Positions 8,461-33,083 of a DNA stretch of 64,000 nucleotides are shown piece by piece. Within the stretch, counting starts at the first letter, position 1. Every line of letters begins with the position of its first letter. This stretch comes from Octopus sinensis. Lineage: Eukaryota. The position numbers were made by a program, and so were the translations under genes. The stretch is taken from the NCBI RefSeq assembly GCF_006345805.1, contig NC_043015.1, forward strand, positions 34,658,001 through 34,722,000, read 5' to 3'. Under the pieces are notes generated by a model. That model was not told the origin of the DNA. It searched no databases and saw only the letters and a list, made by a program, of their open reading frames with translations.

Positions 8461-8588
8461 CACCTACATATGCACACACACACACACACACATATATATA
8501 CACCTACATATGCACACACACACACATATATATACACCTACATATGCACACACACACACACACACATATATATACACACCTACATATG

Positions 8589-8622
<34 letters not shown>

Positions 8623-10839: not shown

Positions 10840-10934
10840 TTCAATACTCAATACTTCATTTTCATTATTCACTTCCAGAGTCAAGGTAAAGCTGGTCGAT
10901 GGGGAACAGCTGGTTGAAGCCCTCAACGACTCTT
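10840..10934 (-). CDS. mdm2: Central exon (E)ESLRASTSCSPSTSFTLTLEVNNENEVLSIE
   Basis: Strong acceptor tttttttcatctctcttcag; phase-1 entry fits the upstream exon. The donor is ambiguous (GTAGGA chosen; GTATTG and GTGAAT are also phase 0). Confidence 0.7.
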
Positions 10935-12229
10935 CTGAAGAGAGATGAAAAAAACAATAGATATATGCAAACTTTTACTTGGAAGGTAAGAAAAATATAG
11001 AATGTACAACTTTGAAAGAGGTTAGTGAAGGTGAGAGAATGATGAAGAAAGCATTGATCCAACATGTCACACGCCATCTTCTGTGTCTCCATAGATGCAA
11101 TGAACCATTAACTGAGCCTTCATACACAAACATCATCGACTCAACTTTGAACTCAAAACTATTTTATCGTTGGTTACTCAACAAAATATTAAAAAAATTG
11201 TTTGCCTTTTATTTTGTTTTTAATGTTTCCTAATTAGTGAAGTTAATTTGGCTTATTAAATATGTGAGCTAGCTGTTATATGCAAACCCAGGTTTATATG
11301 AAAAACTAAATCAGTTACAGAAAAACTGAAATACAATAAAAAAAAATATCCAAAAACCAAAATTATGTCATTTTATTGCAAGTTAATGTTCAGTCACATA
11401 CAGGCTAACTATGATGGGGTATACCTATGACCAAAACCTTTCCAAATGTGACCATCCTGTCCCATTACAAGTATCCAGAATTACTTGTTATTTCTACCAG
11501 ATCAAACACCTGTGTAATGGTTCACTCATAGGCTCTCTTGATGGTTAGATGGTTATAGCATTTAGTTTTAGTATTGGCTATAGTAATAAGAATTGGTAGT
11601 AGCTACAGTAGTTAGTTTTGGTCATCATTATAGTTAGTGGTTGCAGTAGTGCTAGTAGCTATAACAGTTAGTGTTGGTGGTTATTATAATTAGTGTAGTA
11701 TAACCAACAATTCAGCTCTGATAAAAGTAGTGTATGTCATCTAGATAAACACCAAATCACTAAAAACCCTCCACAATCAAGCAGATATATTTATTGTTTC
11801 AGGTGTATTGTACCAGCAACTAGCTGAACAGCACACTGCATGATCCAGCATGCAGTGTTGCAGTCCTGACATGTCTTGTTGCTTTTTCTGTCCAATGTAT
11901 TAGTGTGTACCAAGAGACTTTATGCAGTGTTTAAGCATACAGGCCAGATATTGATCATAGCAGAAGTGTGTAAAGTTACAGTATAACTGGAACTATGAAT
12001 CTGTACTTGTTTACTTCAGAATTGGAGGTTTAAGATTTTGTCTACACATGTTTCTTTGATCAGTTGTGTGGCACTTGACTGACAATCCAGCTATGACCAT
12101 CCTGTTCTCTTTTTATATTCAAAACTGACTTACCCAGTATATTTATTTATTTTTAAGATGAATGTTGAAGATTGTGAACTTTGTTCAATGAAAAGTAGAG
12201 AGATGATGGTTTGGAATTGAGCTACAAAC

Positions 12230-12365
12230 CTAATAATGAAGAACTTGTTTGTGTGGTCGTGGTCTCTGAGGTGCTACTGGTAATGTCCGAAGGTGTAGAT
12301 TGCATTTGGCCAGGAGCAGAAGAATGAGAAGTCAGACGGCTATTTGTATCTAGCATTTCTTTTAG
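12230..12365 (-). CDS. mdm2: Ser/Thr-rich exon LKEMLDTNSRLTSHSSAPGQMQSTPSDITSSTSETTTTQTSSSLL(E)
   Basis: ttctttctttacaattcaatag acceptor, GTTTGT donor, 136 nt, phase 0-1, open; it links the flanking exons in frame. Confidence 0.8.
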
Positions 12366-12409
12366 CTATTGAATTGTAAAGAAAGAAACCAAGTTTTTAT
12401 AACAGGTGA

Positions 12410-12870
12410 CAGGTTTATTAACATATTTCAGCAAAGCACAGTCATTAACATTTCACAATGTGACAGTAATAAACGTATCACAGTGTGATATGATTATTAA
12501 AACATGCCGAGTTCAAATTCTGCCAAGGTTCACTTTAGTTTCATCCCTTCGGGGTTGATAATAAGTACCAGTTGGGCACTGGAGTCGATGTAATCAACTT
12601 AACCCTCCCCTGAACTTGCTGGCCTTGTGTCAAAAATTTGAAATCAGTATATCACAAGAAGACATGATTAAATATCATAACATGACACAATTATTAATAT
12701 ATCATAATGTAACATAATAACATGTTACATGACAGTTAACATGTCACAGCTAACATACCTCAACTTGACATAGTTATTAACATATATCAACACAATACAA
12801 TTATTAACATACAATAGTATGACATGGTTCTTAACATATCACAACATATTCAACTTGGCAAACTGAAATG
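12410..12870. repeat. Degenerate roughly 30-bp minisatellite (ttattaacat.. units) split by a SINE at about 12505-12645
   Basis: Units are present on both sides of the SINE. Confidence 0.6.
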
Positions 12871-13324
12871 TCACTGCAATTATTTCAGAAATTTGGCAAG
12901 AGTAATATTTTCAAATATTGATAGTGACAAGTGATGACAGAATATTGCAATAATATATCAAATAGTGTAAAATGATGACAGGGTATTACAATAACATTGA
13001 TCTTTATAAAATCTAATCAAATCTTTCCTATATTCAATTAACGTTAAATTATCTCTACCTCAAAGTGTCTCAAATAGTCACTATTACTGATATTATTATC
13101 ATCACTGTCCTGTAATCAAAGACTTGGTATTTGAATTGGCAATGCCATCAGTTAATTCCTCTCTAAGCAGTCCTTTAACTAAATTTATGTGAGGTAAAAA
13201 CAAAGTAGTTAAGCCAGAACAGATGCATTGCATGTAAGAGGCATCAACTACTGTTCAAAGAATCTATAAACAAGCTTGTGTTCTGGAAATAGAATTATAA
13301 TAATAATAGCAATATAAATCTCAC

Positions 13325-13400
13325 TTCTTCACTGTTCAGTCTTTTTGTGAGTTTTGGACGATATTCTGGGCTTTCTATTCCATATTTGGCAATAAGAGAT
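13325..13400 (-). CDS. mdm2: p53-binding domain copy 2, third exon (P)SLIAKYGIESPEYRPKLTKRLNSEE
   Basis: ttcttttatattcctcag acceptor, GTGAGA donor, 76 nt, phase 2-0. Confidence 0.85.
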
Positions 13401-13853
13401 CTGAGGAATATAAAAGAAATTTTTAATCAGATTATACCATTATTAACATACAGAGTAGAAAAAGATTTACATCAGGACAATGTTTTTTTTCTCTTTTGTT
13501 ACTTGCTGCTCACCTCTGAGAGAAGTTTCAGAATTATGTGGGAGAGGGTTCTAATGATTCTTTACCTGAAACTAAAACCTTACAGATAAGGCAAGAAAGC
13601 TTCAAGCACTAGAAAAAAAAAACAGCTAAAAAGATCACTTTGAAACAAAGTAAAAATAAATCTTTTAATTATTTTGAAGTCAAAAGACAATCTCAGTGGT
13701 CAGTATTCAACCAAGGATCGCTACTTTGTATTAGTTCTAGCAGATGCAAAGATTGCTATTCTATGGTAATAGATAGGATAGGAGACAGGAAAATGGATAT
13801 TATTTATATTTAAATTTTTACAGTTAATTTTAAATTAGTCACAAGATACTTAC

Positions 13854-13987
13854 GGAACATCATAAATTATGAATTTTTCTAATTTAAATACATCTGCTAA
13901 TCTGTCATTGCGACATAGGAAAATCCAAGGTTGTTCTGGATCAAACAATTTCCGCGACCAAATATAATGTTTTAAATATCTAAAGAT
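13854..13987 (-). CDS. mdm2: p53-binding domain copy 2, core exon IFRYLKHYIWSRKLFDPEQPWIFLCRNDRLADVFKLEKFIIYDV(P)
   Basis: ttatgttgcag acceptor, GTAAGT donor, 134 nt, phase 0-2. Aligns without gaps to the SWIB/MDM2 core (YL..YI...L[YF]D......C.ND.L..[VL]F....F). Confidence 0.95.
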
Positions 13988-14639
13988 CTGCAACATAAAC
14001 CAAACAATGTGATTCCATTGGGAACATAAAAAGTTAAAACACAAAAGGAAGAAATAAAAACATACAAAAGACAGTTGGAACTGATCACCTGACTACAACA
14101 AACATTCAGGCTCAAACAGACTCAATTCTTAACGCTTTGTTCTGTTTTAAATGTTATTGTTCATCTATATTCCTTTTAGCCAACAGTTGTGTTAGTACAC
14201 ACAACTTTAAGTAATAGCCTTTTTGATAGTAAAATATCTTTGTAAATCATGAAAGATACTTGTAAATAATTAGTCAAAAAGGGTGATGGCTGACTAAATC
14301 AATAAGGTGACATCCTACTAATGAAAAGGGTAATGTCTTAGTACCAAAGCTGGTATGTGTTAGAAAGGTATACAGTGTAATATTACAGGAAGATAACTGT
14401 AATATAATTGGACAGCATTTTAGGAAGATATCTGTTCTATAACTTGTACTATGCCAGAAGGAGACAGCATTAAATAGAGACAACTTGCATTAGAGAAAGA
14501 ATTCATCAATTACTACTGGATATAAATCATATCAACATAATCTGTATTATCTTACTCATAGTAACAGAGTGTCCATTAATCTCTATCTTCCTCATCTATA
14601 CAGCTAACATTTATACTTCCATGTCACAAAATAACATAC

Positions 14640-14714
14640 CTCTTTTTCTGTAAACATATAGCCCTTGGCACCAGCAACATGGAGAATCTCCAGAAAAGAT
14701 GGTTTCACACTGTA
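14640..14714 (-). CDS. mdm2: p53-binding domain copy 2, first exon YSVKPSFLEILHVAGAKGYMFTEKE
   Basis: tttgatatttcag acceptor, GTATGT donor, 75 nt, phase 0-0; KP.FL..L...GA....F...E motif. Confidence 0.93.
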
Positions 14715-15399
14715 CTGAAATATCAAACAAAATAAATTATTAGCAGTAAACTATTACAAGGCCACAGTGTTATAAGAATGAAGAGTGAGAGTGTGTCATT
14801 CAAACTGTTTCTGTAGGTATTGGTGATAAAGGAAGTAATATAGACATTGAAACCAGCACTCCCAAGAATAATGTGAGATAAATGTTATATAGAAAGAGAT
14901 GAACTTATAGTAGCTTACAAAAGAGGTGCTGTTGCTCTTAATCTTCTCATTACCGACCTGGCCACAGACGCCTGAGAATTTTCCTGGCTTATGTTACCAA
15001 CCTGCCTGAAAACAGCTGAAATAAGCTAGTCATATTTAAACGGGAATTTCAGCACAAATCTCTTCAGTACATTCACGAAAGCAAGTGATTTCACAATGTA
15101 AACAATTGTGTTATACAGTCTGACATTATTTTACATGATATCTGAGGGCTGAGAATTTTTGGAGAGTTTTTCACAATTTTTACCACTTTGGTTTTCTGAA
15201 ATGTTTCAGTATGGATGAATAATAGATACCAGTTCTATGTTGCCCAGCAGAAAAACTGGATTCAAGGTATTTTCCAAAGAACACAGAAAAATCTAAGAAA
15301 ATATACAGCAAACATAAAAACCACATATGTGATTATGAATCCTATTTCTTTTCCCAAAATGAAACGATTCTGTCAATATTTGCTCTTCAATGTAGCTGA

Positions 15400-16320
15400 C
15401 AAAGAGGTTTGCATCCTAGTTTCCAAAGCAACCCCAGTGACTTGTTTGAGAAAGATAAGCAGTTATGGGTTAGGACAAGCACAGTTAAACAGAAGGTTGT
15501 TGTAGCACTGAGAACAGATCTAGAAAGAGTTCAAGAGCTGATAGACAGACATTGTGAAGAATGACAGCATAGAGTGAATAAATGTCTATGAGGAAAAGGA
15601 GTTTAGACTGTCTGGACAGAAAAGAGAAGGAGTTGAAGAAGTTTAGGGCATGGCTAGTGTCTTTAATGTGTAAGAGTAACAAGGGGTGATATTTTGTGAT
15701 GGAACAATGAGAGAAGTTCAGTAGGTAGTTACATATAAATACAACAGGGTGGTCAGGATTGTCTGGTTTGTGGATTTTGCAGATAAAGTAGATGGTAGAG
15801 ATTCAGGGTGTGGTTACAATGAGGTTAGTGGCAGAAGGTGGAAGAGATCCAGAAGAGGTAAGTTCAGGCACAGTGGAGGACACTTGTCTCTAGTAGTGGC
15901 TGGCACAATCATTAGAGAGTCACTGAGTTGGCAAGATGCCTCTTGCTTCTACAAGTTATAATTGCCATGTTGTTCCTTCACCAGACTACAATGGTTCCAC
16001 CTTTGTGAGATGATCTGATAATGACATCTCACCATTTACAACTTCCCATCTTGTTGGTTGTTTCTTGAAATTGAAGACACCTAAATTAAAATAGCATCTA
16101 TGGACAAATAAATTGACAGAGTGGTGTAGGCCCAAACCTGATGTCCAGTTAGCTTTTTTGAGGTTGGTGAAGTCATCCTCAATCAGGGGATCTGGATTTA
16201 GGCCCCTGCTAAGGAAGGCTCATCCAGCATCAATGAAACATAGATTGTTGGGGATAATGCGACTCTGGAGAATGAGTAGCCAAATTGTTTGCGACTTATT
16301 TTGAATTTAGTTTTTTATTC
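15400..16320 (-). mobile_element. Degenerate LINE endonuclease/RT remnant
   Basis: Coding-like composition with multiple stops; family not resolved. Confidence 0.4.
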
Positions 16321-16950
16321 TGAAGTTTGCTGGTGAGGTACAATGTTTGAAAACATAATGAGTAAAAATCCATGAAAGAGCAGGAGAAAGAAGAGAATGG
16401 GTGAGCTCCTGTGTCACATTTGACACACAAGGAGCAGAGGGTGCATGCGTGTGTGTAAGTATGTACAATCATACATATTTCTTCATCATTAGCAACTACT
16501 TTTCCATGCTTGCATGGGGCAGACTTTCTCCTTAACCAGACATGTTTTCACAGAAGACTGAAAATGAACAACACAACTATAACAGTGATGCTTATTTACA
16601 ACCATCTCTTGAATCAAGACGAGGATACACATACACACGATAGACTTCTGTCTACCAAATCTGCTGACAACTCTTTAGCCAGCCCAGGGTTGTAACAGAA
16701 GAAACTAACACAAGGTGCTGCGTAGTAGAACTGAACCCAAGATGACATGGTTGGGAAGCAAGCTTTTTAACCACACTCATACACTTGTGCCTACTCTCAA
16801 TGTAAATACAGACACATGGCAATCATCTGAAATATAACAACAACTGTGGTTCCATATTGTAAACCCAAACTCTCTAACAACAAACATTATGTTACAACAG
16901 TGATAAAAAAGAAAAAAAGAAAAAAAGATAAGGAGGACAAGCTAACTTAC

Positions 16951-17025
16951 CAATGGTGAAGAGTTTTGGCCAAGATTGACTGGTTCTGATGTTGAACTTG
17001 TGATAACATCATCACGTGGTAACAT
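16951..17025 (-). CDS. mdm2: Inter-domain linker exon MLPRDDVITSSTSEPVNLGQNSSPL
   Basis: tcatcttctcag acceptor, GTAAGT donor, 75 nt, phase 0-0. Confidence 0.75.
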
Positions 17026-17239
17026 CTGAGAAGATGATCAGATAAGATGAGATAACATAGGATAACATCATGCGGTAACATATGGGGAAGATGATGAAAG
17101 ATGGTCAGATATAAATCTGAGATGATAAGATACTAAACACATAACATCAGGTATCATGAGTAGATAGGAGAACACACCGTGTGATAAAAGCTGAAAAGAG
17201 GATCAAATAGATATAAGATATTCAGATATAGAAAAAAGA

Positions 17240-17695
17240 AAACTGGAGGTGTTGGGTGGATGCTGGATAAACTAATAACCCTTATGAAGGACAGTATACT
17301 GGCACTTGTGCCCGTGCTAGTAGGGTGCCAAGAGCACCATCCAAGTGTGATTGTTGCCAGAGCGGCTAACTGGCTTCCGTGCCAGTGGCACATAAAAGGG
17401 CACCAATTCGAGCATGATCGTTACCAGCATCGCCTTACTGGCACCCGTGCCGGTGACATGTGCAAAAAGTTTTGAGCAAGGTCATTGCCAGTACTGCCTG
17501 ACTGGCCCCCGTGCTGGTGGCATGTAAAAAGCACCCACTCTTGGAGTAGTTGGCGTTAGGAAGGGCATCCAGCTGTAGAAACTCTGCAAGATCAAGATTG
17601 GAGCCTGGTGCAGCCATCTGGTTCGCCAGCCATCGGTCAAAATCGTCCAACCCATGCTAGCATAGAAAGCGGACGTTAAACAATGATGATGATGA
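17240..17695 (+). mobile_element. SINE / LINE-tail repeat with aagggcatccagctgtagaa core and (gat)n tail; copies at about 25130, 27500, 42400 and 55850 (same strand) and about 5590, 7360 (opposite strand)
   Basis: Near-identical segments recur across the window. Confidence 0.8.
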
Positions 17696-17805
17696 CTATA
17701 TTCTGAATGATATTAATGATCAAAAGAACTTGCTGTACTATGTTAGGTAACATAAGAACAGGGTTGTGTTGTCTATTCATGCACCGAAAATCTTTTATCT
17801 TTGTT

Positions 17806-17967
17806 TAAGTGAAAGCCAAGATTGAGAGTTAGCATTTGCAGTGAGGACAGAGATGTGATGATGTGAGATGGTCATAAAAGATATATTTATATCTTTTATG
17901 ACCATCTCACATCATCACATCTCTGTCCTCACTGCAAATGCTAACTCTCAATCTTGGCTTTCACTTA
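17806..17967. repeat. Perfect inverted repeat: two 80-bp arms with a 2-nt spacer
   Basis: 17806-17885 is the exact reverse complement of 17888-17967, checked base by base. Confidence 0.97.
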
Positions 17968-19102
17968 GACAAACATGTTGCACAGATGAGAAAAGATTTT
18001 AGAATGTACATTCTCAATTTGTTGTTATGACAACTAAGAAACTCTGTAGACAAAAACAAATGTAGAACGATCAGTAATTGTTGCTACTGTTGAATGCTTT
18101 GGAATCAAAAATGGCACATGGGTCTCTCTCACACACACTCTTCTGGCTGAAGAAAATCTAACTGATTTCAACTATATATTGCAGCATTTATTCAGTGTTG
18201 CAGCATTCTAAATCCAAATCCTGCTCTGAGCCACGAGGGAAGCAAACTTAATCTGCTGCTCAGTTCAGTACCATCACCTAGCATTCTGAGTAATGTTTTA
18301 GTGACGTCTACAAACTCCACATTTGAGCCGAAGCTTTGCAAAACCACCACCACCATCCTTTTTGTCCTATATGAAATAACAAATAATATTAATGTTTATC
18401 ATTATATAAGGCAGAACCTTTAGCACACTGGACAAAGCATTTTGCCTGTCACTACATTGAACTCAAATTCGGCTGAAGTCAACTTTGCTTTTCATCCTTT
18501 CAGCGGTCAACAAAATAAGTCCCGGTCAAGTACTAAAAGTGATGTGACTGACTTCCACCTTCCTGTAAAAACTGCTGGCCCTGGGCCAAAATTTGAAACC
18601 ATTATTACTATTTGACTGGTACTTAATTTTATCAATATCAAAAGAATGAAAGGCAACATTGACCTGCGGAGGTTAACTTTTGCCTTTCATTCTTTCAGGG
18701 TCAACAAAGTACTTCTCAGGTACTAAGATCAATGATAATAACTAGCCACCCACCACTCAAAATTGCAGTCTTGTAACTAAATCAGAAATCATCTCCATCA
18801 TCAATTTTCCTATTTGAAATGATAGAGATTTTACAGTAACATTAACTTCCAAAGCACACCCATACACGCATTCTCAAGCAACTATGTGATTGCTCAGCCT
18901 GCTAGATATAGCAGACACATCTACTTCGTATCATGTCTTAATGTCTTAAAAAAAGAAGGATGTAGACAACATTAATCTAGAGAGAATGGTGAATGTTGGA
19001 CTTGCTTTAATCCCAGATGTGCAACATCAGGGTTGAGCTTGGAGTGCTAAACAACAACAAAATATATACACTGACTGGATAAAAACTAGACATAATATTT
19101 AC

Positions 19103-19158
19103 CATTTGTGGTGATGTGTGTTCTGAGTCAGATTTACTAACATCAAGGATTTCCGTGG
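19103..19158 (-). CDS. mdm2: Inter-domain linker exon (A)TEILDVSKSDSEHTSPQM
   Basis: tctttactatttcag acceptor, GTAAAT donor, 56 nt, phase 1-0; restores frame after the 22-nt micro-exon. Confidence 0.75.
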
Positions 19159-19360
19159 CTGAAATAGTAAAGATATAAAACTTATAGACCAAATATATTC
19201 CACTCATGTAGACAGAAGGTTTACTGTCTTATATAACAGAGAAAAAGAATGGTACGCAAGATGACAGTTATCCAGAGAGAACCTAGACTAGGAATCAGTG
19301 AGAAAACTGTGCTTCAGACTACAAAACGACACAAACAAAACAGTTTATATCCACAGTCGA

Positions 19361-19492
<132 letters not shown>

Positions 19493-19626
19493 TGAGTGTT
19501 ACAAAGCCAGTAACAAGTGACCTTGCTAGATTTTCAATCAATAAGAAAACAATGGGTTTGGACATGTGAAGTCACCAGCAGTGGGTCAATGAACAGGTAG
19601 AGACAAGACAATTCTGTCGACACTAG

Positions 19627-22539
19627 CATTATGAATTATGATATCCTACCATTAATTCCTTTCTACAATAGTAAATAAGAGATAAAAATATAGATATCTT
19701 ATTTTGTATTGAGTACAAAAATGCGGCATAGTGTCGAATGACATTGATAGATGGACACTGTCTTTACTTAATATAAAACAATGTGTCTTAATTGTTGGAC
19801 AGCCATGATTAACGAATTAGATGGCGAGCAGAAGTAAAGTTTGAATAAAAGCCTTCTTTGAACTGGTTTATGACAAATCTTTATTCAAACTTCATTCTAA
19901 TTGGATGCCAAAATGTTCGAGAGGACCCTACCAGACGATCCAACTGAGGAATATTATATTTACTGGAAACAGATGCTATACATCTACATAGCAAAAGCAA
20001 AAGTTCCAGAGGAATCTAAACTGGAAGTACTTTTAGCAAGGACCAACCCCATCGTCAAAATATCCAGAACCTTCGAGGCAGCAATAGAATGCCTGGACTC
20101 AAAGTTCATAAAGAAGGCTATGAACTCAAAAACAAAAAGAAAACAAGTCTATAGAAGAATTTATGCCAAGCCTTCAGGTGCTGGCCAAGAGAAGTAAAAT
20201 CCAAGCCCTAACAGCAGGCCATTACTGAGAAATTCTAATTGATGATGCCTTTGTGGCTGGGCTTCAGTCACCAATCAGACAAAGACTTCTTGAGTCATCA
20301 GATGACAGCTTAGAAACACCCTATAAGCTTGCTCAGACCATGGAGGTGGCCACTGAAGACACTTGCAACCTATCGCAAGGCTCAGCTGGTATCAATCAAC
20401 CACCCCGTCTTGCAGCTGCTAAATCAGCATGCTTTTGGTGCAGTGGAGACATCCATAACAAAAAAAAAATCAATGCCTGGCGAAACTGCACTTGCAAAAG
20501 GTGTCAGAAGAAAGGCCATTTGGAGAAAGTCTGCTTCTCAAAAAAGCCACCAAGAAACAAATGAAACTTCCCTAAAACAGAAGCTATCACAGAGCCTGAG
20601 AGCAACTCAGAGGAAAACAGTGACGGGACCTTATCATCCCTCATTTTAGCTATAACAAATGGCTGGTACCTGTTAAAATTAAGGACAACAATACACAAGC
20701 CCTTCTTGACACGGGTTCTAACAGAACATTTATAAAAGCGAATCTTGTTGCAGTCTGGGGATTACAATATGATCATACCTGCCCAGAAAAAGTTAACTTG
20801 GCCAACAACACAACAGTGGAAACTAAAAGGAAGCATATAATGCTAATTTCCTTGTGGCTGAGCACCTTGTAGCTCTGGAATTCATCGGAATCAATATCTT
20901 CAGTCAACACTCTGTAGTTACAACTGACTTCAAGGACATGCTCAAACCTGTGCCATTCTGCATGTCCATGCCAAGCCTAAAATGCATCGGGTACAAACTA
21001 CTTCCTGGCATTAAGACCTCTAAGCTAAAACCAATTACAACTTCAAGACACAGTCGCAGAGATGCAGAGTTTATTAAGCACAAAATTGATAGGTTACTTT
21101 CAGAGGGTGTATTTCAGGAAAGCCATAGTCCCTGGTGAGCTCAACGCTTCGTGACATCTAATGGAAAGAAAAAAAGACTGGTGATCGACTACTATAAATA
21201 TCTACACACAACTGGATGTCTACCCTACCCACCGGATTGATGATCTTCTAAATGAAGTAGCAGCAAACAAGATTTTCAGCAACATAGATATGACAACTGC
21301 ATATCACTAGGTGGAAACTCCTAGCCAAAGACTATAAAGTGACAGCATTTGAAGCAAGGGTGGGGGGGACTGTACAAGTTTAAATGCCTCCCATTTGCAA
21401 AAACATGAGTACCAAAACAGTAATTTCCCACTGGTTCAACCTCTTTTCATTGTTTGAAGCTCCAGGACTTCCTTCATGCTAACTGAACAATAAAAACTAG
21501 AACATCTCCCTATTGACCACAAGGCAATGGTCAATGTGAAAGGACCAACAATACCCTCATGAAGACCATAAATCTAGCACTTAGTTCACTACAACTAGAT
21601 AAAAGACAATGGTTGACAGACCTTTCCATGGCACTATCAGCCATGAGAGGACTCCTCTGTACAGCTACCAACACAGCCCCCCCCCCCTCCATGAGCGAAT
21701 GTTTAAATTTTCAAGATGATCAACAGTAGGAACCATTCAACCTGAATTCCTCCAGAATATTAGAAGCACAATATTGCATTGTCGACATCTCAGAAATAAG
21801 GGGGTTCCACCTGTAGAAAATGTTAAACTGTTGGAGACAATTTCTCCCCACTTTGCACACATAGAATTTGGAAACAGATGAATAGATAGTGTCCACACAC
21901 AATCTCACTCTAGCAGGACAATCTTTCAATGAAGGAAGCAAAGATAACACACAAACAGAACCAGGGCTAACTACATAAACAGAGTTCGACACAGAACAAC
22001 AAAATCCACAAATAATATATCAACAATGGATCCGATCCCAACAGTACACCATTAGAAGCAGAGCTCACAGACCAGCACCTGAAAACATGAGCAGATTAGA
22101 AACTGGCTAAGAGTGTTTGAACAAGGATGATACAGGTAACAAAACTTGCAAAGAATACCTGAACAAGAGTAATACAGGTAACAAAATGCCAACTGTTCAA
22201 AGACAAAAAGAGACAAGAAAACAGAGATCAGGACAAATTATCAAGACCCCTTTTTATGCACCATGACTAACTTTTCACTGAGCAGGGAAGACTGTTATGA
22301 AATATAATTAATCCTACTATTAATTCCTTTCTACAATAGTAAATAATAGATATAAATATAGATATCTTATTTTGTACTGAGTGTACAAAAATGCAGCATA
22401 GTGCCGAATGACATTGACAGATTGATACTATGTGAATCGTTGTGGGACAGCCGTGATTAACAGATTAGACAGCAAGAAGAAGAAGAAGAAGAAGAAAAAA
22501 AGTTTGAATAAAAGCTTTCTTTGAACTGGTTTACGACCA
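19627..22539 (+). mobile_element. Decayed, internally deleted Ty3/Gypsy LTR retrotransposon with both LTRs, antisense to the host gene
   Basis: Direct repeats about 19627-19875 and 22293-22539; purine tract before the 3' LTR; gag CCHC knuckle (CKRCQKKGHLEKVC), protease LLDTGS, RT remnants (RLVID, YP.PRIDDLL, FSNID). Confidence 0.88.
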
Positions 22540-23109
22540 CTGGAAAGATAAGATTTTATGTTAACAACAGACACTGCATGTAAATTGCTATTTTCCAGTT
22601 TAACAAACAACGGTTTGGTTATAAATATTTATGGATGTGAACATAGAACCACATATTTCAAGACAGGAAACCTTACTAACAGACTAAATCAACTGATTGC
22701 CACAAACTTGAGAGTTCTTACTTAATAAATCAAAGTCAGCAGTGATATTTCCTTCATCTACTTTCAACTTTTTATCCACTTACTAGGAAGATACAAGTAC
22801 ACCATTAGTTTACTAAGTTGTTATGGTTATTAGCCAGCTTTGTATCTGATCACTAGTTCCTTTATGTCCATAACAGAAAGTCTATTTGGCCATAACTACT
22901 TAATACAGGAGTACAGCTTGCTAGACAAACATTTAGTCGTAAAGTGTGTGTGTGTGTGTATGTGAGAGATATGTGGATTATAGGGCAGAATCACAGGAGA
23001 AGAGACTAAAGTTTGATTAGTTAGTGACACAAAAGCCAAAGTAAAACTGCTCCAACAAAATATGCCATGTTAATGGGTAGGCACTGTATCCAAAAATAAA
23101 CAATAGTTG

Positions 23110-23971
23110 TACGAGGGGGTACCCAAAATGAAACCGGAATGTTACACTTTTATCGCCTTGAAAGTATTCTCCATTTAAAACAATGCATCGGTCCAGATGC
23201 ATTTTCCCCTGTTTGAAGCAGTGACTGGAACTCTTGTGAAGTGATGCCTTTTAACACCTCCATTGTTTTTTTCATCACCTCTTCCACATCTGCAAATTCC
23301 ATAGCACTAGATTTCATCACCAGTGATGACCTTCAAAAAAAAAAGTCTGGATCATCTTCCAATTGTTCTTTCAGTTCACGACACACTTTCAGTCATGACT
23401 GCTTTTGATCTTCTGTGAGCAAGAGAAGGCACGAATTTTGCTGCAAGTCTTTTCATTCACAATTCCTTGCTCAAAATTCGTTGGTAGAAGCTTCAGGACA
23501 CACCAATCATATCAACAATTTCAGTCAATTGTTCAGTGATAGTCCTTCAAGATGAGTTCATGAATTTTCAAGGTTTTCATTCATTCGGGAGATTGACGGC
23601 TGATGTGAACAAGGTTGGTCTTCAAATGACAAGTGACCATTCCTAAAGCGTGGAAGCCACTCATAAACTTGTGTTTTGCTCATGGCACAGAATTCTTGTA
23701 AGCTGTTTGAAGCATGACAACTGTTTCAACCACCATTTTCCTCAACAGAAAACAGAATTCCTTCATTTCAGCCATCACAAAAATCAACAAAGATGGGAGA
23801 AGCACTGCAAAACAAAGACATACCCCATGACAGTATGACCTGACCTGACACTGCTGGTAGCAGACTGTTGCCTGAGGGTTGCATCAAGTGGCTTCTAGTG
23901 GTGGAAACCTGAACTACATCAGGCTTGTCTCACAGAGAACATTTCCAGTTACGTTTGGATACCCTCTCATA
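23110..23971 (-). mobile_element. Non-autonomous mariner element
   Basis: TA-flanked imperfect TIRs (tacgagggggtacccaaaatgaaaccggaat ... atttccagttacgtttggataccctctcata); transposase C-terminal remnant DRCIVLNGEYF. A related fragment lies at about 36640-36800. Confidence 0.8.
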
Positions 23972-24102
23972 TTGTCTGTTATTGTAATTCTGTTGTGTAA
24001 ATATGTTTTTGTTGTTGATTTTTTGCATGTGATCCAGTAAATACATGATGGGTGCTGATATGACAAAAGGAACGAGGTAAGAAACTGAAGGTCTATACTT
24101 AC

Positions 24103-24124
24103 CATCACTGTCACAGGAGTCCTC
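24103..24124 (-). CDS. mdm2: 22-nt micro-exon EDSCDSD(A)
   Basis: Very strong acceptor ttcatttcctttctccag and GTAAGT donor; phase 0-1 pairs with exon 19158-19103. Confidence 0.72.
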
Positions 24125-24924
24125 CTGGAGAAAGGAAATGAAGTTTGAAAACATGGAGGAAAAGCCAAGGAACTAAATTCAGATGATAACTTAGCTGTAA
24201 TGGATACTAATCTTACTAATTAATAATATGCTATAATATAGTATTGGTGACTGGAAGAAACAATTTCTGATGGTAATACGTAGCAAGGTAGTGGTGACTG
24301 AAGGGGAGATATGAGTTAATGAGGTTAATATAGTCAATGGTATCTACACAAATTATCTTTCCGTGAATTATTTTTTCTCATGAATTATTTGCTCTGTATT
24401 GAAATTATATATATATACTGTAATCAAAATTGTATACTTCACCAATTTTTTCTGATACCACTTATCTTTCTCACACTCAGGACCATTTCATTTCATATTC
24501 ATAATAATATTCTTAGTACTGTACCTCTCTACTGACATTTTACATAGATCACCCTTCTATGTCACCAAATTAGCTCTCCACCACTACCCTACATTTATTA
24601 CCTTCCCCATGCATAATGCCTGCCACTCTCTGCTTATACCTGCATCCCATCCAACAAAATATCATCTCTCATCCTCCACCTCTTTCACTACTGTCAGTTA
24701 TCTACCCTATCACCCCTTATCCAGCAATCATTATATCAACCCTATACTTATCAACTACTCTTCCATTTGTCTTTCATCAATTATAGCCACACCCTCACTC
24801 TCCCCAACCTCTATGTACCATTTCCTTCTGTCCTCATTCACTTCTGCTCATCTCCTAACTTGAGGGCCTAACCTGACATTTCATCATCACTATTTTATCT
24901 CTCCAGCTCCATCCTCGTTACACC

Positions 24925-24981
<57 letters not shown>

Positions 24982-26176
24982 TTAATGTGAGTAGCCATGT
25001 TGCTCCTCAACAAGAAACTTCTGTTCCAGTCATTTGTCTCATTATTTAACTTCTTATCTCCTAGCATAAAGCAACTTCCTTCTCAGTAGTCCTAATTAGC
25101 TGAAGGGATCTTAATCTTGCCGGCTACATGATCTTACTAGTGCTGGAGCCACAGAAAAAGCACTTGTACACTTTGTAAAGTGGTTGGTGTAGAGAAGGGC
25201 ATCTCGCTGTAGAAACCACACCAAAGCAGACCATTGGAACATGATCTACGTTCTCAAATGCATCAGGTCTTGTCAAACTGTCCAACCAATCCCAGCTTAT
25301 AAAATTGACATTAAAAGATACTGATTGTATACATATATATTAATATGCACTCCTCAGTAGTCCACTCTACACTATTCATTGGTATATATTACTGCTCTCA
25401 TTCTCACTCTCTCTCTCTCTCAGCAACAGTAAACCATCACCATCATGCAACTAAGTATTTCTATTAACTTATATAGAAATTAAATTTCTGTTAATAAAAC
25501 AGACCAACCAATGTAATGTCATCGTTACATGTGGCCACTACACCATCACTCCACCTAATAACTGAACTTTTACAGATTGCTCAATCTCCTCAGAATAGCA
25601 GCAGAATCACACCCTAGGTTTTAAAAAATTGACATACTGAATGTAGTCCTAGATACCTTCCAAATAGGAAAAAGACAGGATGGTTATGGCCTTTCATCAT
25701 AGGCCTGCTTAGAAATGGTCTGAGACAAAACAATAATACTACCACCATCACTCACATCCCAAACTACACCCTATAATCACTCATACTTCAACTATACTCT
25801 ACCACCACTCACCTTCATAATATTTTCATGATGAATCACACAACATAATGACTCACAGTAGATCAACTTCTAAATGTGATTATGCAAGTGAAAGATAAAT
25901 GTAATCATGGAAGAAGTGAAAGATGCATTTCAACCCAGCAAACAGGATTATGGCTACCTGACCAAGTGACCAACTACAGATAACTTCATCAACTGTAAGT
26001 ACTACACACAATTAATGTATCACCCACTCACCAAAATTATATTATTGACATTTCTATTCAAAGACTAAATCAACCCCAAAAGTTACCAATTTTAGTAAAT
26101 ATAACAAAAGACTTATAGAATAAATATTATCTAAGACCAATTATAAAATTGTCAAATATATGTTATGAAGTCTTAC

Positions 26177-26237
26177 CTCATTGCTGTTAAAACTGTTTGA
26201 TTTATTTGAAAATGTAACATTTTGGTAAAGCAGACCT
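26177..26237 (-). CDS. mdm2: p53-binding domain copy 1, third exon (R)GLLYQNVTFSNKSNSFNSNE
   Basis: tttttctttgtag acceptor, GTAAGA donor, 61 nt, phase 2-0; LLYQNV resembles Mdm2 MIYRNL. Confidence 0.9.
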
Positions 26238-26767
26238 CTACAAAGAAAAATTTAAAAAAACAACAATTAGATTTCTACAATAATAGTAAAGAAGAAATTA
26301 AAAGTGAAATCAAATAATAAACAATATCAGAAAATATTGATTTCTTACATAGTCAGGCTCTTCATGTGAATTACAAAATATTTGAAAAATACTACAACTA
26401 AGAATCAAAACTGGATTACAAATTTAATCAACCAGATTTTTACCCATAAACCAAAATATAATTGCCAACATGAAACACACAACAAATCTTTGAAAGTAAA
26501 TTTATTTATTATTTTATTAGACATAAGAATGCATCAGTCAATGACTTTCCAACAGGCTTAGAAATAACCTTAGCCATGAACAGCTATCTCCCCTGCCATG
26601 GAAACTAAACTGCTTAAGAATGGAATCTGCCATGCTTGAGATTAAAGTTTATTCTGACGGCACAATTCTAAAGAAATAGTCATTTCATAAAAAAAAAAAG
26701 AAAGCCAATCAATCACTCCTTTTGTTTGAAGGAAGGAAAAAGATCAATAAATGACATGGCTTCCTCT

Positions 26768-26803
<36 letters not shown>

Positions 26804-26899
26804 AACAACAAAATTGAGGAAAGAGCAAAAACTGCTTAAGAAAAACCCGAAAGAAAACAGATGGTACAGGGCAAAGCAGCCTTAAACCAGCAGAGCTCA

Positions 26900-27370
26900 G
26901 AATTCTTGTAGATATGCTCCAGGAGAGAGGGAGGGGGGCTTTTTTTAACAACCCACTCCAGCTCACAGCTGACCTCTTTGGCAAGCCAAAAAGTAGAGAG
27001 TAGATATGTTCCAAGGAAGCAGTGCATAGTAACTTCAGAATAAATATTTCATTAGGGAATTGTCCTTTTCCATAAAACTTCCCTCTTGAAAAAGTAAGGA
27101 GAGTAATAGCAAAAGCTCAAGCAGGATCTACTCCAGGACCATCTGGCACAAATGCCCACCACTGCTGCTGGAGAGGCTAGTAAAACAGTTTTAAATGATC
27201 TCGAACAAAAAGCAGGAAAAAGCTCTAGAAACTTGCCAAGGACTGTTTTGTCTCAAAAGAAGCAAACTCAGCCAGACTTGACTAGTTTCAAGACTTCTCT
27301 CTATTAGATGTTAAAGATCTTTTAGAGCATCAATGCCAAGAAACTAATAGCATATCTACACGTCAATGAG
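26900..27370 (+). mobile_element. LINE RT remnant
   Basis: PGPSG and FRLLSLLDVKD motifs. Confidence 0.5.
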
Positions 27371-28519
27371 TGTCCAGGAAAAGCTACTCTGGTTGTTGCA
27401 AATAAATCCCATCATTAAGCAGGCAAAGAAGAATACACTATTACTCCCACTCAGTCAAGAGGCTATTTTGTTTTATAATTTACTTGGCAGCCTCAAAACA
27501 AAAGAAGCAGCCAGAATACTCTGTACACTGGGATGGCATCAGAGAGGAGATCCGGTCAATAGAAACCACGCAAAAGCAGACATTGGACTTCAGTGCTGTC
27601 CTCCAACTCTCAAACCACCCAACCCAGGCCAGCAGGGAAGATGGACATTAAATGATGATAATGGTATACATATATACAAATACACATATTGTATACACAC
27701 ATATATATATATATATAAACACACACACACATGTATAGACCATTTAATTTATGCCAGTGAGTTTGTCTGATTCTGATTGCACTGAAACCAAACGAGATCC
27801 AGCTAAATTAAAATTAAGTTTGAAAAACTCTGCATAATTAAATATGAGAAATAATTAAGAGAAAGCTTAAAAATAAACAAGTAATTTGAAGAGAAAATTT
27901 ATGTAGCATTATGTTTTTTCACAGCAAATATTTGGTACTGAATAAAGCAGTACACAATACACAAAATATTAAAAAATGACAATAATTCATTATCTTATAA
28001 ATTAATTAAGCGATATCTAAACTGTAGCATTGAACATTTAAATGATGACATTTAATTAACGACTTGATCAAAATCTGAAAGGTGGAGTGGAGAAAAAACA
28101 TAGTTACCTGTTGACTGTCCTTCAAGAAAAGGATTCAGTCTAGCAAATTCCTTGTCTTTATACAATGGTGAAATTGATGTAGGCAAGCACATTACTTCTT
28201 GAAGCCATTCAAATATTTTATGTATGACCTGCCACACATCTTTTATCCTGGTTGTAATCCTACTTTATTTAGCTTGTATACATGTGCATGTGTTTGTGTA
28301 CTTACATTTTATACTGACATTTAAATATATATCTTAAGGCATGGTGCATTTTCTAATACAGACCACTATATAACTACTACACTGCTTGAAATTTTCCTTC
28401 TCCATCTGCATTGAATCTAATAATGTAAAGAAGGTGATACAGTACAATATAAAGGGAAGTGGCACAGTGCAGCATGAAGATGGCAGCACAATGCCTGTTG
28501 CCTTTGTTAACTGTCTCAC

Positions 28520-28653
28520 CTGACATCAACAACGGTGAAATGATTGCGACGAAAAACTTTGCCCAATTTATCATTACTGCAGTGAACCAACCAGGGCTTG
28601 AGAGGATCATACAACATGTGGGATGATATGTATTTCTTCAAGTAACGAATAAT
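28520..28653 (-). CDS. mdm2: p53-binding domain copy 1, core exon IIRYLKKYISSHMLYDPLKPWLVHCSNDKLGKVFRRNHFTVVDV(R)
   Basis: ctttctctttttcag acceptor, GTGAGA donor, 134 nt, phase 0-2; ungapped match to the SWIB/MDM2 core. Confidence 0.96.
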
Positions 28654-30198
28654 CTGAAAAAGAGAAAGACAAAAATTACTGTTTCAACAATTTCCAGTTA
28701 CTAAACATAACACTACAAAAACTGGTTCTACAGCCAATACTAATGTTAATGTCATGGCTTTATGTGAGGTACAGAAAGGCTCAAAAGCATGATTCTGCAG
28801 AACCAACTTTTGATGGTGTTGTAGTGTAGTAATTTGAATTACAGTATTCACTGGGGTTAACCCAACCTTTATGAATACATTGTAATTCAAATATTTTAGT
28901 TCTTGAAACTATGAAAGCCAAAGTTCTGGACTGGAGTAATTCTTTAAAATGTTTAGGCTTATTTGTAACCAAGTCATGTAGCAGAATCTATTGAAGAGCT
29001 GCAGAAAAATTTTTAGATTAAGAAAAATGGTCTAAAATCCAAAGATCTAAAGGTTAACTGAATAAGTAATCAGAGGAGTTACTTTGCTCAATATGTCAGA
29101 AGGGAGTAAACAGGAGCTCGATACAGGGTCAATACACTGTATCAAGCTCCTGTATCAGTAACAGGTCTATACCTGTTGGATTTCACATTTCTCCACTAAA
29201 TGTCATTTGTTACTTGATGACATATTTTCAGTTTGCCAAGATATATCCACTCAGCTTCCAAAATTTCTTTCATACTTTCTCAAATGAAGTCTTTCTGGCA
29301 GAAGAGTGTTTTAAGCAGCTAACTCAATATCAGCCACCAGAAATAGGCAATCTACAAAAAAATCTGACATTAGCTCTAGACACTAAAAATCTACTTATCC
29401 TCACATGGCAATCTATTATATATGACATTCATTGGAATCCTTAGAGTATACAACCACCAACCAAGTTACTTGGGGAGCATTTTTTTTTTCTAGAAAAAGA
29501 GCAAGACCAAGCCTGCCAACTTTGGAATTCCTCTCACTCGAAACGGTTCTGTTGAGAAGATACATCTGTAATAAAGTCAACTACATAAGAACCAAACCCC
29601 TAATATGCAAATTTGTTTTCAGTGGTCAAAAAGATACCATAACAATTAGGAATTTTTCCCAGTCAAGAAATACCCCAGTTAAGGTAGGGAATTAATTAAG
29701 ACAAGATACTCCAAATGAAAGTATAATTATTCCTGAATATCATTTTGACGTACCTACTTTGACTCCTAATGAAGCATCAACACAGCAACTCAATCAAATA
29801 CTACAAAATAATGAACCATCCGTGGACTTTGTGCAACATCATCCTACTTTATGCTGAATCATAAGGCTACATGTGAATATTTTGGATTACATGAATTATA
29901 CTTAGAAATTCTGAAATTCTATGATACTGTTCTAATATTCTATATATGAGTGTTAATGTCAAACAAGCAAAGTCATTCATTTCCAATAATTTGTGAAAAC
30001 ATGTCTGGTCATGGGGAAATATTACCTTCTTGGGAAACAAGTGAGGATTGGTAACAGGAAGGGCATCTAACCATCGATAAATAAACACTGACTCATGCAA
30101 ACATGATAAACTGGATGTAAAAGCAATGATGATGTTGATAGAGTTTTTTTTTTATATATTTGTAGGGGGGGGGGGAGAAATATGAAATAAAGAATTAC

Positions 30199-30273
30199 CT
30201 CAGACATGCTAAAAGCTTTCCCTGTTGCACCAACAGACTGAAGCAGTTTCAAGAATTCTGGTTTGGGATAAAG
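30199..30273 (-). CDS. mdm2: p53-binding domain copy 1, first exon LYPKPEFLKLLQSVGATGKAFSMSE
   Basis: ttaattcttttcag acceptor, GTAATT donor, 75 nt; matches vertebrate [24 protein letters not shown]. Confidence 0.96.
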
Positions 30274-31834
30274 CTGAAAAGAATTAAAAAGAAAAACAAA
30301 TAGAATTTAAACTGGAAGAAATAGGAACAAAATACATTGATCTACTAATTTTAATTTGACTGCCACCAGCATAGGCAATTCAACTGCTAGCAATGCAGGC
30401 AACTTGACTGTCAACAACAAAACTACTTACGGCATATGGTCTACAATGAGTAATTTTGATAATACATCAGCGAGATCATGAATTGAAATTTGTAATAGCT
30501 TTAATGTAATGAGAGTATTAAAAGGTGATGTGGTGGTAGACAACTTCAATGATGGCTCAACAAGGATAATAAAATAATGAAACTGAATTACTTAAGTGGA
30601 GGCATGTTACATTACTTCTTAAATTTACAAATATACAGAGAAATGTTAGTATTCTCGAATTGGTGTTTTACACTATTTTACTTCCCACTTTATGGGGTGG
30701 GGTATATGCATATAAATTTTTAGTGCAATATATGGATTCATGGATCCTGTGGCAATCACAGAAAAACTCCTCTAGTATACCACATAGTAATCCAAAATGG
30801 AAGAGTATAATCCAAGACGGAGGAGTATAATCTGGAGTTTTATGCATCTGAAACCCAGGAGATCCAATCTATGAAAAAATTATTTCGTGAGGAGTGCATA
30901 GACCAAAAAAGTCAGAAGGCATGAGAGGTGAATATGTTTATTTAACCACTTGATAGTCATAGGATTATGGCTGTTTCATGGCCTTCATCATGTAAGAATA
31001 ACTGCAATGTATAATAAAGTATTTTATATTTCTGCAACAATATGCACGCAATACACTGCACAATCACAAATCAATGCAAATATCGAAGGCTAGCTCTTCA
31101 GATCACCAGACCATCATACTTCAACTCTGCAAATACATAGAAAAGCATCCTTGGGAATCTGGTCACACAGTGTAATGATGGTTGCTTCTGATAGGACCCT
31201 ATGGAAGAAGAAGTGTCTGATGACACTACCCCAACAACTCAACCTGCCCAGGAATAGGGAGTGGAAAAGATGAGTTACACACACTTTTTTCATTTGGGCT
31301 ACTTATTGCTTAAATTTTTTTTTACTTTAAAAGACATTGGGAAGCTCCCTTACAGACACCACAAATAGTAAAGTGTTGCTAATGACAAAACAGCTTGTAA
31401 GATATAGACAATAATGAGGGCCGGGTGGGCCTCTGAAAAGGCTGCTCAATCAAGATAACTTGGACTAAACAAGAACAAATCAAGATATTGATAAACCCAT
31501 CAAAAGTTTAATAAACTGATAGCCATGGACAAAGTTTCAAAATCTCTCAGTATCACATTTAAGAACAATGCCAAAAACAAGCCTTGTGGGTAGAAGGGAA
31601 GGAAACGTTGAAAACTTGGGATTACAGCTGAAGTAAAGTTGTGATTGTTGAGGAGTGATAGCTGTATAGAGAGACTGATGAAAGTAAAGTTCAGAGAAAA
31701 ATCATTTTTATGGAAGACTTAGTAATGATATAAATAGCCATGAATCTATTTGTGGTAACTTTGCTGACATCTTATTTTTTCTTCTCATGACCTGTCAAAT
31801 ACTGGATTACTAGGGAAATGAGAAGTCATTTTCT

Positions 31835-31876
<42 letters not shown>

Positions 31877-33083
31877 AGCAACATACTTAAGATTCACATA
31901 CAATACAAAAGTTAATAACAGGAATACATAAGGTCAACAACGTGATAAGAAATGTTAAAAATAAACAAATAATACTATAACAGTGATGGAAATATGCATG
32001 GATGAAGGGACAGAACTGAAAGAGAACTGAACTAAGTGTAGTAAATTGACATCAGAGGATCTTATTTTACTCATTATAATTCCACTTGAGTAAAAAATTA
32101 CTATTGCTTTTTTTCACTTAAAGGGTGGCTGAGTTCTAAAAATTTAGGAAGTTACATATTTATTATTGGAGAAATGGATACTTGCCTCTCATTAACCAAA
32201 CAACAAAGTTGAAATGGACAACTGACAAGGGACATGAATCTAACAAAGTTTAAATTTGTAAGCATGTAATCAATATTAGAAAAATATTAAGCTCACAGCC
32301 ATTGATAGGAGCAGTGGTTTTAAAACTACCATTAAAATCAGAGAAGTGACAAAACACCAGATGATTAGGAAGAGAGGATGAAAACGAATGAATTCAATAA
32401 CTTTGCCAAATTAGATAGCCCTATGTAGGGGTCAGAGGGGAACAAGGATAAGAAATATCTCACTTTCATTTAAGTATGAGGATGTCTGTGTGTCTGTGAT
32501 TGAGAAAATATCAGTAAATCAACAGGTGGGAGGATATGTGCATGTGTGAATTAACAGGTGTGCATGTGTGTAGATACATAGGTCTATTACATCATATATG
32601 TAAATGTTCATGTGTTCAGTTACCACACCTGTATATAGAGGTAAACATATATATCAGCAGTGTACACATTACATGAGGTAGGCACATGGTTTCCTATGTA
32701 CAAGTGTCCAGAGAGTAGCATGTGCTGACAAAAAAGTGAGTATGCATATAACTATATTCCTTTATTCTTTTATTTCTTTCAAGCAATATGACTGTGGCCA
32801 TGCTGGAGAACTGTCTTTTAGAAACTATAGCATTCCCATGCCAGGAATCAAGCCCAGGCCGCCGAGGTGAAAGCCAGGAACGTGGCTATGTGTGTGTTTA
32901 GTTATGTATGTGAGTCTAAAGGAAGATACTCATGTGAAAATGTGTGCAGTGATGTGTACAATCATGCATTGTGTAAGGAAACATGCATCTGAAAATGTAT
33001 ATATATATATAGTCATACATGTGTATGAGTCTATGTGCAGTCATGCAGGTGAGTGTACAGTATTCTAGATGGGTGTTACTCAC

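Follow-up and report, generated by a model that had tools for sequence, protein, structure and literature searches.

The vertebrate ubiquitin ligase MDM2 and its relative MDM4 (MDMX) share a common plan, with an N-terminal domain of the SWIB/MDM2 fold, an acidic region, a zinc finger of the RanBP type and a C-terminal RING whose tail has an aromatic residue three positions from its end. All described members of this family carry one SWIB domain per chain, and vertebrates possess a second, diverged one through duplication of the whole gene, the two proteins pairing through their RINGs. The published accounts of Mdm2/Mdm4 evolution found by our search describe one p53-binding domain per protein, and explain the tighter control of p53 in vertebrates by higher monovalent affinity together with whole-gene duplication. 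The Mdm domain of a mussel binds its own activation-domain peptide with a dissociation constant of 15 uM, against about 0.1 uM for the human and chicken domains, and its cleft is changed at positions 54, 58, 62 and 93 (PMC10303687). Squid p53-family proteins carry an activation domain, and the main evolutionary survey detected no Mdm in squids, owing to poor genome coverage (PMC5543598). Here we analyze a stretch of 64,000 nucleotides (nt) from Octopus sinensis (NCBI RefSeq assembly GCF_006345805.1, contig NC_043015.1, positions 34,658,001 to 34,722,000; hereafter the window) that contains a gene of the Mdm2/Mdm4 family whose annotated product holds two diverged SWIB domains in one chain, a state that cephalopods probably reached by exon duplication inside the gene.

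The gene is nearly complete in the window and runs on the minus strand from about 61.5 kilobases (kb) down to 3.06 kb. Guided by a collinear cuttlefish protein, and with a phase-constrained scan for a microexon, we rebuilt a chain of 16 exons (41906..3056) in which all splice sites are AG/GT and 1944 nt stay open to a TGA, giving a protein of 648 amino acids. This protein is identical, residue for residue, to RefSeq XP_029648077.1 (Mdm2 isoform X2, Octopus sinensis/vulgaris) and also to CAI9736802.1. It consists of a Ser/Thr-rich lead, SWIB1, an acidic Ser-rich linker, SWIB2, an acidic region, a putative zinc finger of the RanBP type and a RING, the order of parts known from vertebrates, and its RING tail likewise has an aromatic residue three from the end. 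An earlier reading of the sequence alone had joined two p53-binding cassettes to the zinc finger and RING in a single open reading frame and expected the Pfam SWIB profile to match twice in one protein. Both expectations were borne out: on the 648-residue chain Pfam reports SWIB in two stretches (54.3 bits) and zf-C3HC4_3 (40.3 bits). The annotated products, of 648-682 amino acids, are single chains with both SWIB domains. Thus, where every described member of the family has one SWIB domain, the octopus protein has two, and it is a variant of the Mdm2/Mdm4 family through this doubling.

Each SWIB domain is encoded by a cassette of three minus-strand exons, and the two cassettes are separated by about 11.5 kb. 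Cassette 1 comprises exon 3 (30199..30273, 75 nt), exon 4 (28520..28653, 134 nt) and exon 5 (26177..26237, 61 nt), the last of which encodes the end of domain 1 and the start of the linker. Cassette 2 comprises exon 9 (14640..14714, 75 nt), exon 10 (13854..13987, 134 nt) and exon 11 (13325..13400, 76 nt), which completes domain 2. The first two exons of each cassette are supported by their splice sites, by Pfam and by matches in the PDB, and the third by its splice sites and its place in the chain. These six exons are where the sequence-only reading had put them, with its canonical splice sites and without stops or frameshifts: a pyrimidine tract precedes the AG acceptor of each, every donor is GT, and all translations are open. 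Its count of identity between the copies needs a small correction. The 10 matches over 25 residues in the first exon and the total of 32 matches hold; since the second exon has 44 full codons, the value there is 22/44, not 22/45, and the total becomes 32/69 rather than 32/70.

Taken alone, either cassette passes the gathering threshold that Pfam sets for SWIB (25 bits), with 33.4 bits (E 3.9e-8) for cassette 1 and 29.3 bits (E 7.1e-7) for cassette 2. The best PDB match of cassette 1 is MDM2 (E 1.4e-15) and that of cassette 2 is MDM4 (E 4.1e-11), so that the similarity of both to SWIB domains is far above chance. The cassette exons are about 52-54% identical in DNA between the copies, and the introns of the two cassettes do not align to one another. 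The duplication is therefore old and not an artefact of assembly.

Downstream of the cassettes, exon 14 (7623..7727, 105 nt) and exon 15 (6006..6098, 93 nt; DMLVICQDSDMEFWADLSENGSDSD...) encode the acidic region. Bivalve Mdm (E 3e-5) and the cuttlefish protein have acidic regions to which their peptides (SEDPVEDVYVEYEV... from exon 14, and DMLVICQDSDMEFWADLSENGSDSDVELSEA) can be aligned. The last exon, exon 16 (3056..3628, with the TGA stop at 3058-3056), encodes the zinc finger (WCCSKC...CDIC), a basic and Ser-containing stretch and the RING. The exon contains the zinc-finger motif W-C-x2-C...N...C-x2-C, and bivalve Mdm aligns with it at E 3.5e-9; against the Pfam profile Zn_ribbon_RanBP the octopus protein falls short of E 0.01 and the cuttlefish protein scores 17.4 bits. 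The RING reaches 40.3 bits against a threshold of 27 for zf-C3HC4_3 (residues 594-642 of 648), is 66% identical to a bivalve RING, and has the MDM2-type Cys/His pattern and a short tail ending in NYLT. The window was also searched for a duplicate of the acidic, zinc-finger or RING exons, and it contains none. Cassette 1 therefore lacks a tail of its own, and its assignment to a separate gene was rejected because the downstream parts are single-copy in the window.

The two cassettes are joined by three small coding exons of 22, 56 and 75 nt. Exon 6 (24103..24124) is the 22-nt microexon, read as GAGGACTCCTGTGACAGTGATG between ctccag and gtaagt; it encodes the EEDSCDSD region and ends one base into a codon. 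Exon 7 (19103..19158, 56 nt, ATEILDVSKSDSEHTSPQM), identified by a strong acceptor, by the chain and by comparison with the cuttlefish, restores the frame, and the two exons keep it only as a pair, neither of them singly. Exon 8 (16951..17025, 75 nt, MLPRDDVITSSTSEPVNLGQNSSPL) provides the lead peptide of domain 2, and an in-frame ATG immediately follows its acceptor. Between the two domains the chain counts 63 residues, of which 12 are acidic, 19 are Ser or Thr and 3 are basic; the linker proper, of about 55-63 residues, is acidic, Ser-rich and predicted at low confidence.

The exon before cassette 1 (33290-33084) and the exon before cassette 2 open alike, with (A/C)TG TTA CCA directly behind ...cag, and both encode peptides with LLP or LP followed by acidic and Ser/Thr-rich residues. 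On this resemblance the duplicated unit may have included a fourth, preceding exon.

The same arrangement is found in other cephalopods. In an exhaustive profile search covering 1.84 billion representative proteins, the best match was a 772-residue 'MDM2' of the cuttlefish Acanthosepion (Sepia) pharaonis (CAE1323096.1), with two matched stretches and collinear with the window, the inter-domain part included. At the Octopus bimaculoides locus (L002) all 16 exons, the 22-nt microexon among them, lie in order with identical lengths and splice dinucleotides and translate exactly to XP_052830784.1. The cuttlefish locus (L001) has the same exon order over 71 kb, with SWIB exons of 75 and 134 nt and with zinc finger and RING encoded downstream of both SWIB domains. 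Lengths, phases and peptide of the linker exons are conserved there as well: the cuttlefish microexon has 22 nt (GATGAATCATTTGACAGTGATG, AG/GT) in the same phase, the next exon opens with CC as in octopus, and the linker peptides are collinear (NEDESFDSDATEILVSSMSDSDHE.. in octopus, NEEDSCDSDATEILDVSKSDSEHT.. in cuttlefish). Thus three independent assemblies of three species hold the two cassettes. Within the otherwise fast-evolving linker we observed two islands kept between octopus and cuttlefish, DSDATEIL..S.SDS(E/D)H and P.DD.I.SSTSE.P, the first of which looks like a hydrophobic core with acidic or phosphorylatable residues on either side.

Nine other molluscs have a single SWIB domain: the bivalves Sinanodonta, Potamilus, Solemya, Pecten, Mya and Dreissena, the gastropods Lottia and Gigantopelta, and the chiton Liolophura. 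The single-domain proteins (Mytilus trossulus MDM and those of Sinanodonta, Pecten, Mya, Lottia, Gigantopelta and Liolophura) are orthologous to the cephalopod protein and collinear with it in their acidic, zinc-finger and RING parts, and they share with the cephalopod domains a K at position 58 and a P at position 72. They differ in having one SWIB domain, an R in place of the W of DPxxPW, and a DDLWFVEE motif. In the bivalve Sinanodonta woodiana (L003) the single domain is split into exons of 75 and 134 nt with the same phases, and the cassette structure is therefore ancestral for molluscs and was copied as a block. The human MDM2 exons for this domain likewise measure 75 and 134 nt.

The sequence-only reading had listed features shared by the two copies and absent from the human protein (RYLK, DP..PW and DV) as marks of intragenic duplication. 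Only part of this list stands. The W in both cephalopod domains (DPxxPW), where other molluscs have R (DPxDPR), is specific to cephalopods, but RYLK-like and DV motifs also occur in single-domain molluscs. As a separate observation, single-domain molluscs have a DSTDDLWF(V/L)EE motif between SWIB and acidic region (P0002, P0004, P0005 and P0007-P0009), which was not seen in the octopus and cuttlefish proteins (P0184, P0003).

Intragenic duplication itself, the core of that reading, is supported by a tree. Between octopus and cuttlefish, domain 1 is 69% and domain 2 is 64% identical, whereas the two domains of the same species are 42-46% identical. Cephalopod domains are 41-58% identical to those of single-domain molluscs, which among themselves reach 56-73%. 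In a neighbor-joining tree on about 78 aligned positions, where long-branch attraction is possible, the domain 1 clade and the domain 2 clade each receive 100% bootstrap and the clade of all cephalopod domains 91%. The domains group by type across species and therefore the duplication predates the octopus-cuttlefish split, which molecular clocks place on the order of 250-300 million years ago. The second domain probably arose by tandem intragenic duplication of a block of 75 + 134 + about 60-76 nt, after separation from the other molluscs sampled, in a data set whose cephalopods were octopuses and a cuttlefish. Taken jointly, the two-domain architecture and this history are in our judgment highly probable.

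Constraint on both copies was assessed in two comparisons. Between the two octopuses the ratio of nonsynonymous to synonymous rates (dN/dS) is 0.13 for domain 1 and 0.18 for domain 2, from tiny counts of 1 nonsynonymous to 2 synonymous and 3 to 4 changes respectively, while it is 1.4 for the linker and 0.20 for the whole gene. Between octopus and cuttlefish the proportion of nonsynonymous differences (pN) is 0.19-0.20 in either domain and that of synonymous differences (pS) is 0.78-0.82, which is saturated. Neither copy is near a dN/dS of 1, in agreement with the earlier proposal that both are maintained by selection, and these comparisons support purifying selection on both copies throughout.

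We used AlphaFold2 on residues 68-319 with a three-row alignment to obtain a predicted structure. The model contains two folded domains with the same order of strands and helices, at predicted local distance difference test (pLDDT) values of 75-88 and 85-92, and the 57 residues between them (model residues 93-149) fall below a pLDDT of 50. The top Foldseek matches are the N-terminal domains of MDM2 and MDMX, with target-normalized template modeling (TM) scores of 0.8-0.91 and root-mean-square deviations of 1.1-1.7 A for the best. Cleft positions were then assigned, in human numbering, by ungapped alignment. Positions 54, 58, 62 and 93 have been named as decisive for the cleft (PMC10303687); they read L/G/M/V in human MDM2 and L/K/G/I in the bivalve Sinanodonta. 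In domain 1 they are I/K/S/V (octopus) or I/K/S/I (cuttlefish), and in domain 2 of both species F/K/W/I. Further cleft residues are L57, I61, Y/F67 and V75 in domain 1, and L57, I/V61, F67 and F/C75 (F75 in octopus) in domain 2, and F86 and F91 occur in both. The signature at 54/62, I/S in domain 1 and F/W in domain 2, is thus specific to each domain and conserved between octopus and cuttlefish, which suggests that the two domains are non-redundant.

As a mechanism we propose that each domain would bind an amphipathic helix of the FxxxWxxL type from the activation domain of p53, p63 or p73, as MDM2 does with its one domain. Thanks to the flexible linker, two of these helices would be bound by one ligase at the same time, contributed by two subunits of a tetramer or by two motifs in one chain, and two weak tethered sites would raise the effective affinity for a ligand that is tetrameric or has two motifs. 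Should the RING dimerize as in MDM2 and MDMX, a dimer would by analogy offer four sites to the four-armed p53-family tetramer. Bivalent binding of a p53-family activation domain is plausible, with a likelihood just short of even. More tentatively, and with clearly lower likelihood, coleoids may have built in one polypeptide a functional equivalent of the vertebrate MDM2-MDMX pair, in which diverged clefts read different helices and a dimer gives a four-site match to a tetramer. The different helices would then be two activation-domain motifs, different members of the p53/p63/p73 family, or one of them a non-p53 partner. The best overall explanation, a two-domain Mdm2 formed by old intragenic duplication, with both copies selected and with putative bivalent binding, is in our estimate likely.

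Several points weigh against this explanation. The join between the cassettes rests on the RefSeq and GenBank gene models and on the conservation of the linker exons. The cassettes measure 270 and 285 nt, both multiples of three with phase-0 borders, and skipping either keeps the frame. Exon 8 starts with an in-frame ATG (17025-17023, giving Met-Met at the exon 7/8 junction) in both Octopus species, and it is conceivable that this ATG gives a shorter one-domain product through an internal start peculiar to Octopus. An old UniRef model of the O. bimaculoides gene (A0A0L8HLB2) carries domain 2 only. The bulky F54 and W62 of domain 2, and F75 in octopus, might narrow or fill its cleft; the last helix (positions 96-100) aligns ambiguously to human MDM2; and the dN/dS values between octopuses come from the tiny counts given above.

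The strongest competitor accepts a single chain and lets only one domain, probably domain 1, bind the p53-family activation domain, the other serving a different helical ligand or an MDMX-like intramolecular regulation. Its case is drawn from the clefts, whose signatures are domain-specific and conserved between octopus and cuttlefish (I54/S62 with V or I at 93, as against F54/W62/I93), from the closer match of domain 1 to MDM2 (1.4e-15) than of domain 2 to its best match, MDM4 (4.1e-11), and from the faster evolution of both domains compared with single-domain mollusc proteins (41-58% against 56-73% identity). A diverged or non-binding second domain is compatible with everything seen. However, most hydrophobic core and cleft residues are kept in both domains (L57, I/V61, F86, F91), the two are under equal constraint (pN 0.19-0.20), and no alternative ligand is known. 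We regard this possibility as real but improbable.

More doubtful is a reading in which the cassettes are mainly alternatives, such that skipping, or a promoter and start at exon 8, yields one-domain proteins of different specificity and the two-domain chain is a minor form or a product of gene prediction. The symmetry of the cassettes (270 and 285 nt, phase 0 on both sides) would permit this, exon 2 can join exon 6 or exon 8 in frame, the acceptor of exon 8 stands directly before its ATG as in a canonical first coding exon, and A0A0L8HLB2 offers a domain 2-only model. Like mutually exclusive exons, the cassettes are alike in length and phase, but three conserved coding exons lie between them, exons that are sensible only if translated downstream of something, and both cassettes are present in every annotated isoform. 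All isoforms recorded in RefSeq and GenBank hold both domains: O. sinensis X1 and X2, three O. vulgaris models, and O. bimaculoides X1/X2 under four accessions; the 2015 O. bimaculoides model XP_014771380 also does. Nor is the exon-8 ATG conserved, since the cuttlefish counterpart opens with ACA ACT (Thr-Thr) and lacks an ATG. The UniRef model takes its first exon (20949-20860) from the intron between the cassettes. We rejected this exon as a part of the linker because its only GT donor leaves phase 0 and cannot join the acceptor of exon 7, which needs phase 1; with no in-frame splice to exon 7, A0A0L8HLB2 is regarded as a prediction error. On these points we consider mainly alternative cassettes unlikely.

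A false fusion, by gene predictors, of two neighboring genes, one coding for SWIB only and lying upstream, the other a canonical Mdm2, would fit the 11.5 kb with transposon debris between the cassettes and the ATG-bearing lead exon of domain 2. Yet no stop-bearing terminal exon or other downstream exon was detected after cassette 1, cephalopods share the length, phase and peptide of the 22- and 56-nt linker exons, and four independent annotations join the cassettes, which leaves fusion of two genes very unlikely. A falsely duplicated segment in the assembly, for which no supporting point was found, has a negligible likelihood against copies that share only 42% of protein positions and about 53% of DNA positions, with unalignable introns, and the same arrangement in three independent assemblies of three species.

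The remaining exons of the two-domain Mdm2 gene, all on the minus strand, encode its N-terminal lead and the region between domain 2 and the acidic part. Exon 1 of the 648-residue form (41877..41920) has its ATG at 41906 (coding 41906-41877) and a strong GTAAGC donor; its peptide MENHLADDHQ is the start of XP_029648077.1, and the cuttlefish counterpart is MERPVLNEHR. An alternative first coding exon, that of RefSeq isoform X1, was located at 60012..60099 by tblastn of the X1 N-terminus and by reading the sequence (MPGVAK...SYYVK plus 1 nt, GTAAGT donor), and a further alternative first exon of the longer isoforms lies at about 61561-61502, also inside the window. Exon 12 (12230..12365, 136 nt) encodes a Ser/Thr-rich middle region and exon 13 (10840..10934, 95 nt) continues it, both placed by the chain.

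Exon 2 (33084..33290, 207 nt, phase 0-0) encodes the Ser/Thr-rich lead peptide in three tandem units of 60-63 nt (QQRLLPxxGSSV three times). The repeat, at 33084-33297 of the window, has units 63-81% identical; its first unit overlaps the acceptor, and the internal units thus hold an acceptor-like 'caacag'. The same three units occur in O. bimaculoides and one in the cuttlefish. Tandem Repeats Finder did not report this internal repeat, which was picked up by a seed-based repeat finder.

The introns hold much debris of mobile elements and simple repeats. Stop-interrupted reverse-transcriptase fragments occur on the minus strand at 43745-42936 and 35187-34627 (RVT_1 27.5 and 18.4 bits, both below threshold), and a fragment of a PIF1-like helicase, as found in Helitron-type elements, at 10026-9361 (minus, 121 bits); it too is stop-interrupted transposon debris. 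Two similar short open frames at 23330-23150 and 36836-36657 (minus, ...ITSQEFQ...GDKSV...) appear by eye to be remnants of one repeated element, possibly the C-terminus of a mariner-type transposase. Microsatellites rich in TG/CA and TA, together with (TC)n/(CA)n tracts, fill much of the introns (40500-37960, 8760-8270, 19570-19320 and elsewhere) and give rise to long open frames that are spurious and abound in Cys, Val, Tyr and Ile.

The protein models are already public, so the sequence itself is not new. The records of this gene are XP_029648076.1 and XP_029648077.1 (O. sinensis), CAI9736800-802 (O. vulgaris), XP_052830783-787 (O. bimaculoides) and CAE1323096.1 (Acanthosepion pharaonis 'MDM2'). 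Isoform X1, 'E3 ubiquitin-protein ligase Mdm2' (XP_029648076.1, the same as CAI9736801.1), was retrieved by a cuttlefish-seeded search; a word-indexed homology search with a rough concatenated query had given only the old O. bimaculoides fragment and one bivalve protein, and missed the RefSeq octopus and cuttlefish proteins. The RefSeq and GenBank entries are automatic annotations that bear the name Mdm2 and hold the doubled domain without comment, and a full-text literature search turned up no publication that treats cephalopod Mdm2 or describes two or tandem SWIB domains in an Mdm protein. The deposited cuttlefish model CAE1323096.1 ends in about 170 residues of low-complexity Phe/Leu/Ser sequence and lacks a RING. 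In the cuttlefish genome a single last exon (L001 72259-72972) codes for a normal zinc finger and RING, and the splicing of the model is therefore wrong at its 3' end.

Two SWIB-fold domains in one chain are known from Chlamydomonas CreSWIB1 (PMC4758235). Proteins of that type resemble the octopus Mdm2 in this respect and differ in having no RING, zinc finger or acidic region and in carrying SWIB domains of the chromatin/nucleoid kind, not the p53-binding kind. In ENA, JGI and Logan assemblies we also observed ligases (P0103, P0113, P0117, P0120, P0122 and P0147) in which two or three SWIB-like stretches of the Mdm type precede an acidic region, a zinc-finger-like motif (C-x2-C) and a RING of the MDM2 type; P0120 has a TDP-43 N-terminal domain in addition. 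They are much more diverged than cephalopod Mdm2, often below the Pfam SWIB threshold, and by similarity their stretches are not orthologous to the cephalopod domains. Two further proteins with two SWIB domains, P0043 and P0062, the latter heading a cluster of 35 members, lack a RING. The doubled architecture may thus not be unique to cephalopods, and if the P0103 group are animal proteins it arose more than once.

Domain-count surveys of the Mdm family missed the cephalopods. Where vertebrates have one SWIB domain per chain and gained a second by duplicating the whole gene, a doubled domain under selection since before octopus and cuttlefish diverged represents a different solution. The cephalopod protein would provide a two-site ligase, made by nature, in which the avidity of motif-mediated interactions can be studied. 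If the more tentative reading, an equivalent of the MDM2-MDMX pair in one polypeptide, is true, a lineage with a weak monovalent interaction would have come to tight p53 control independently and by way of avidity.

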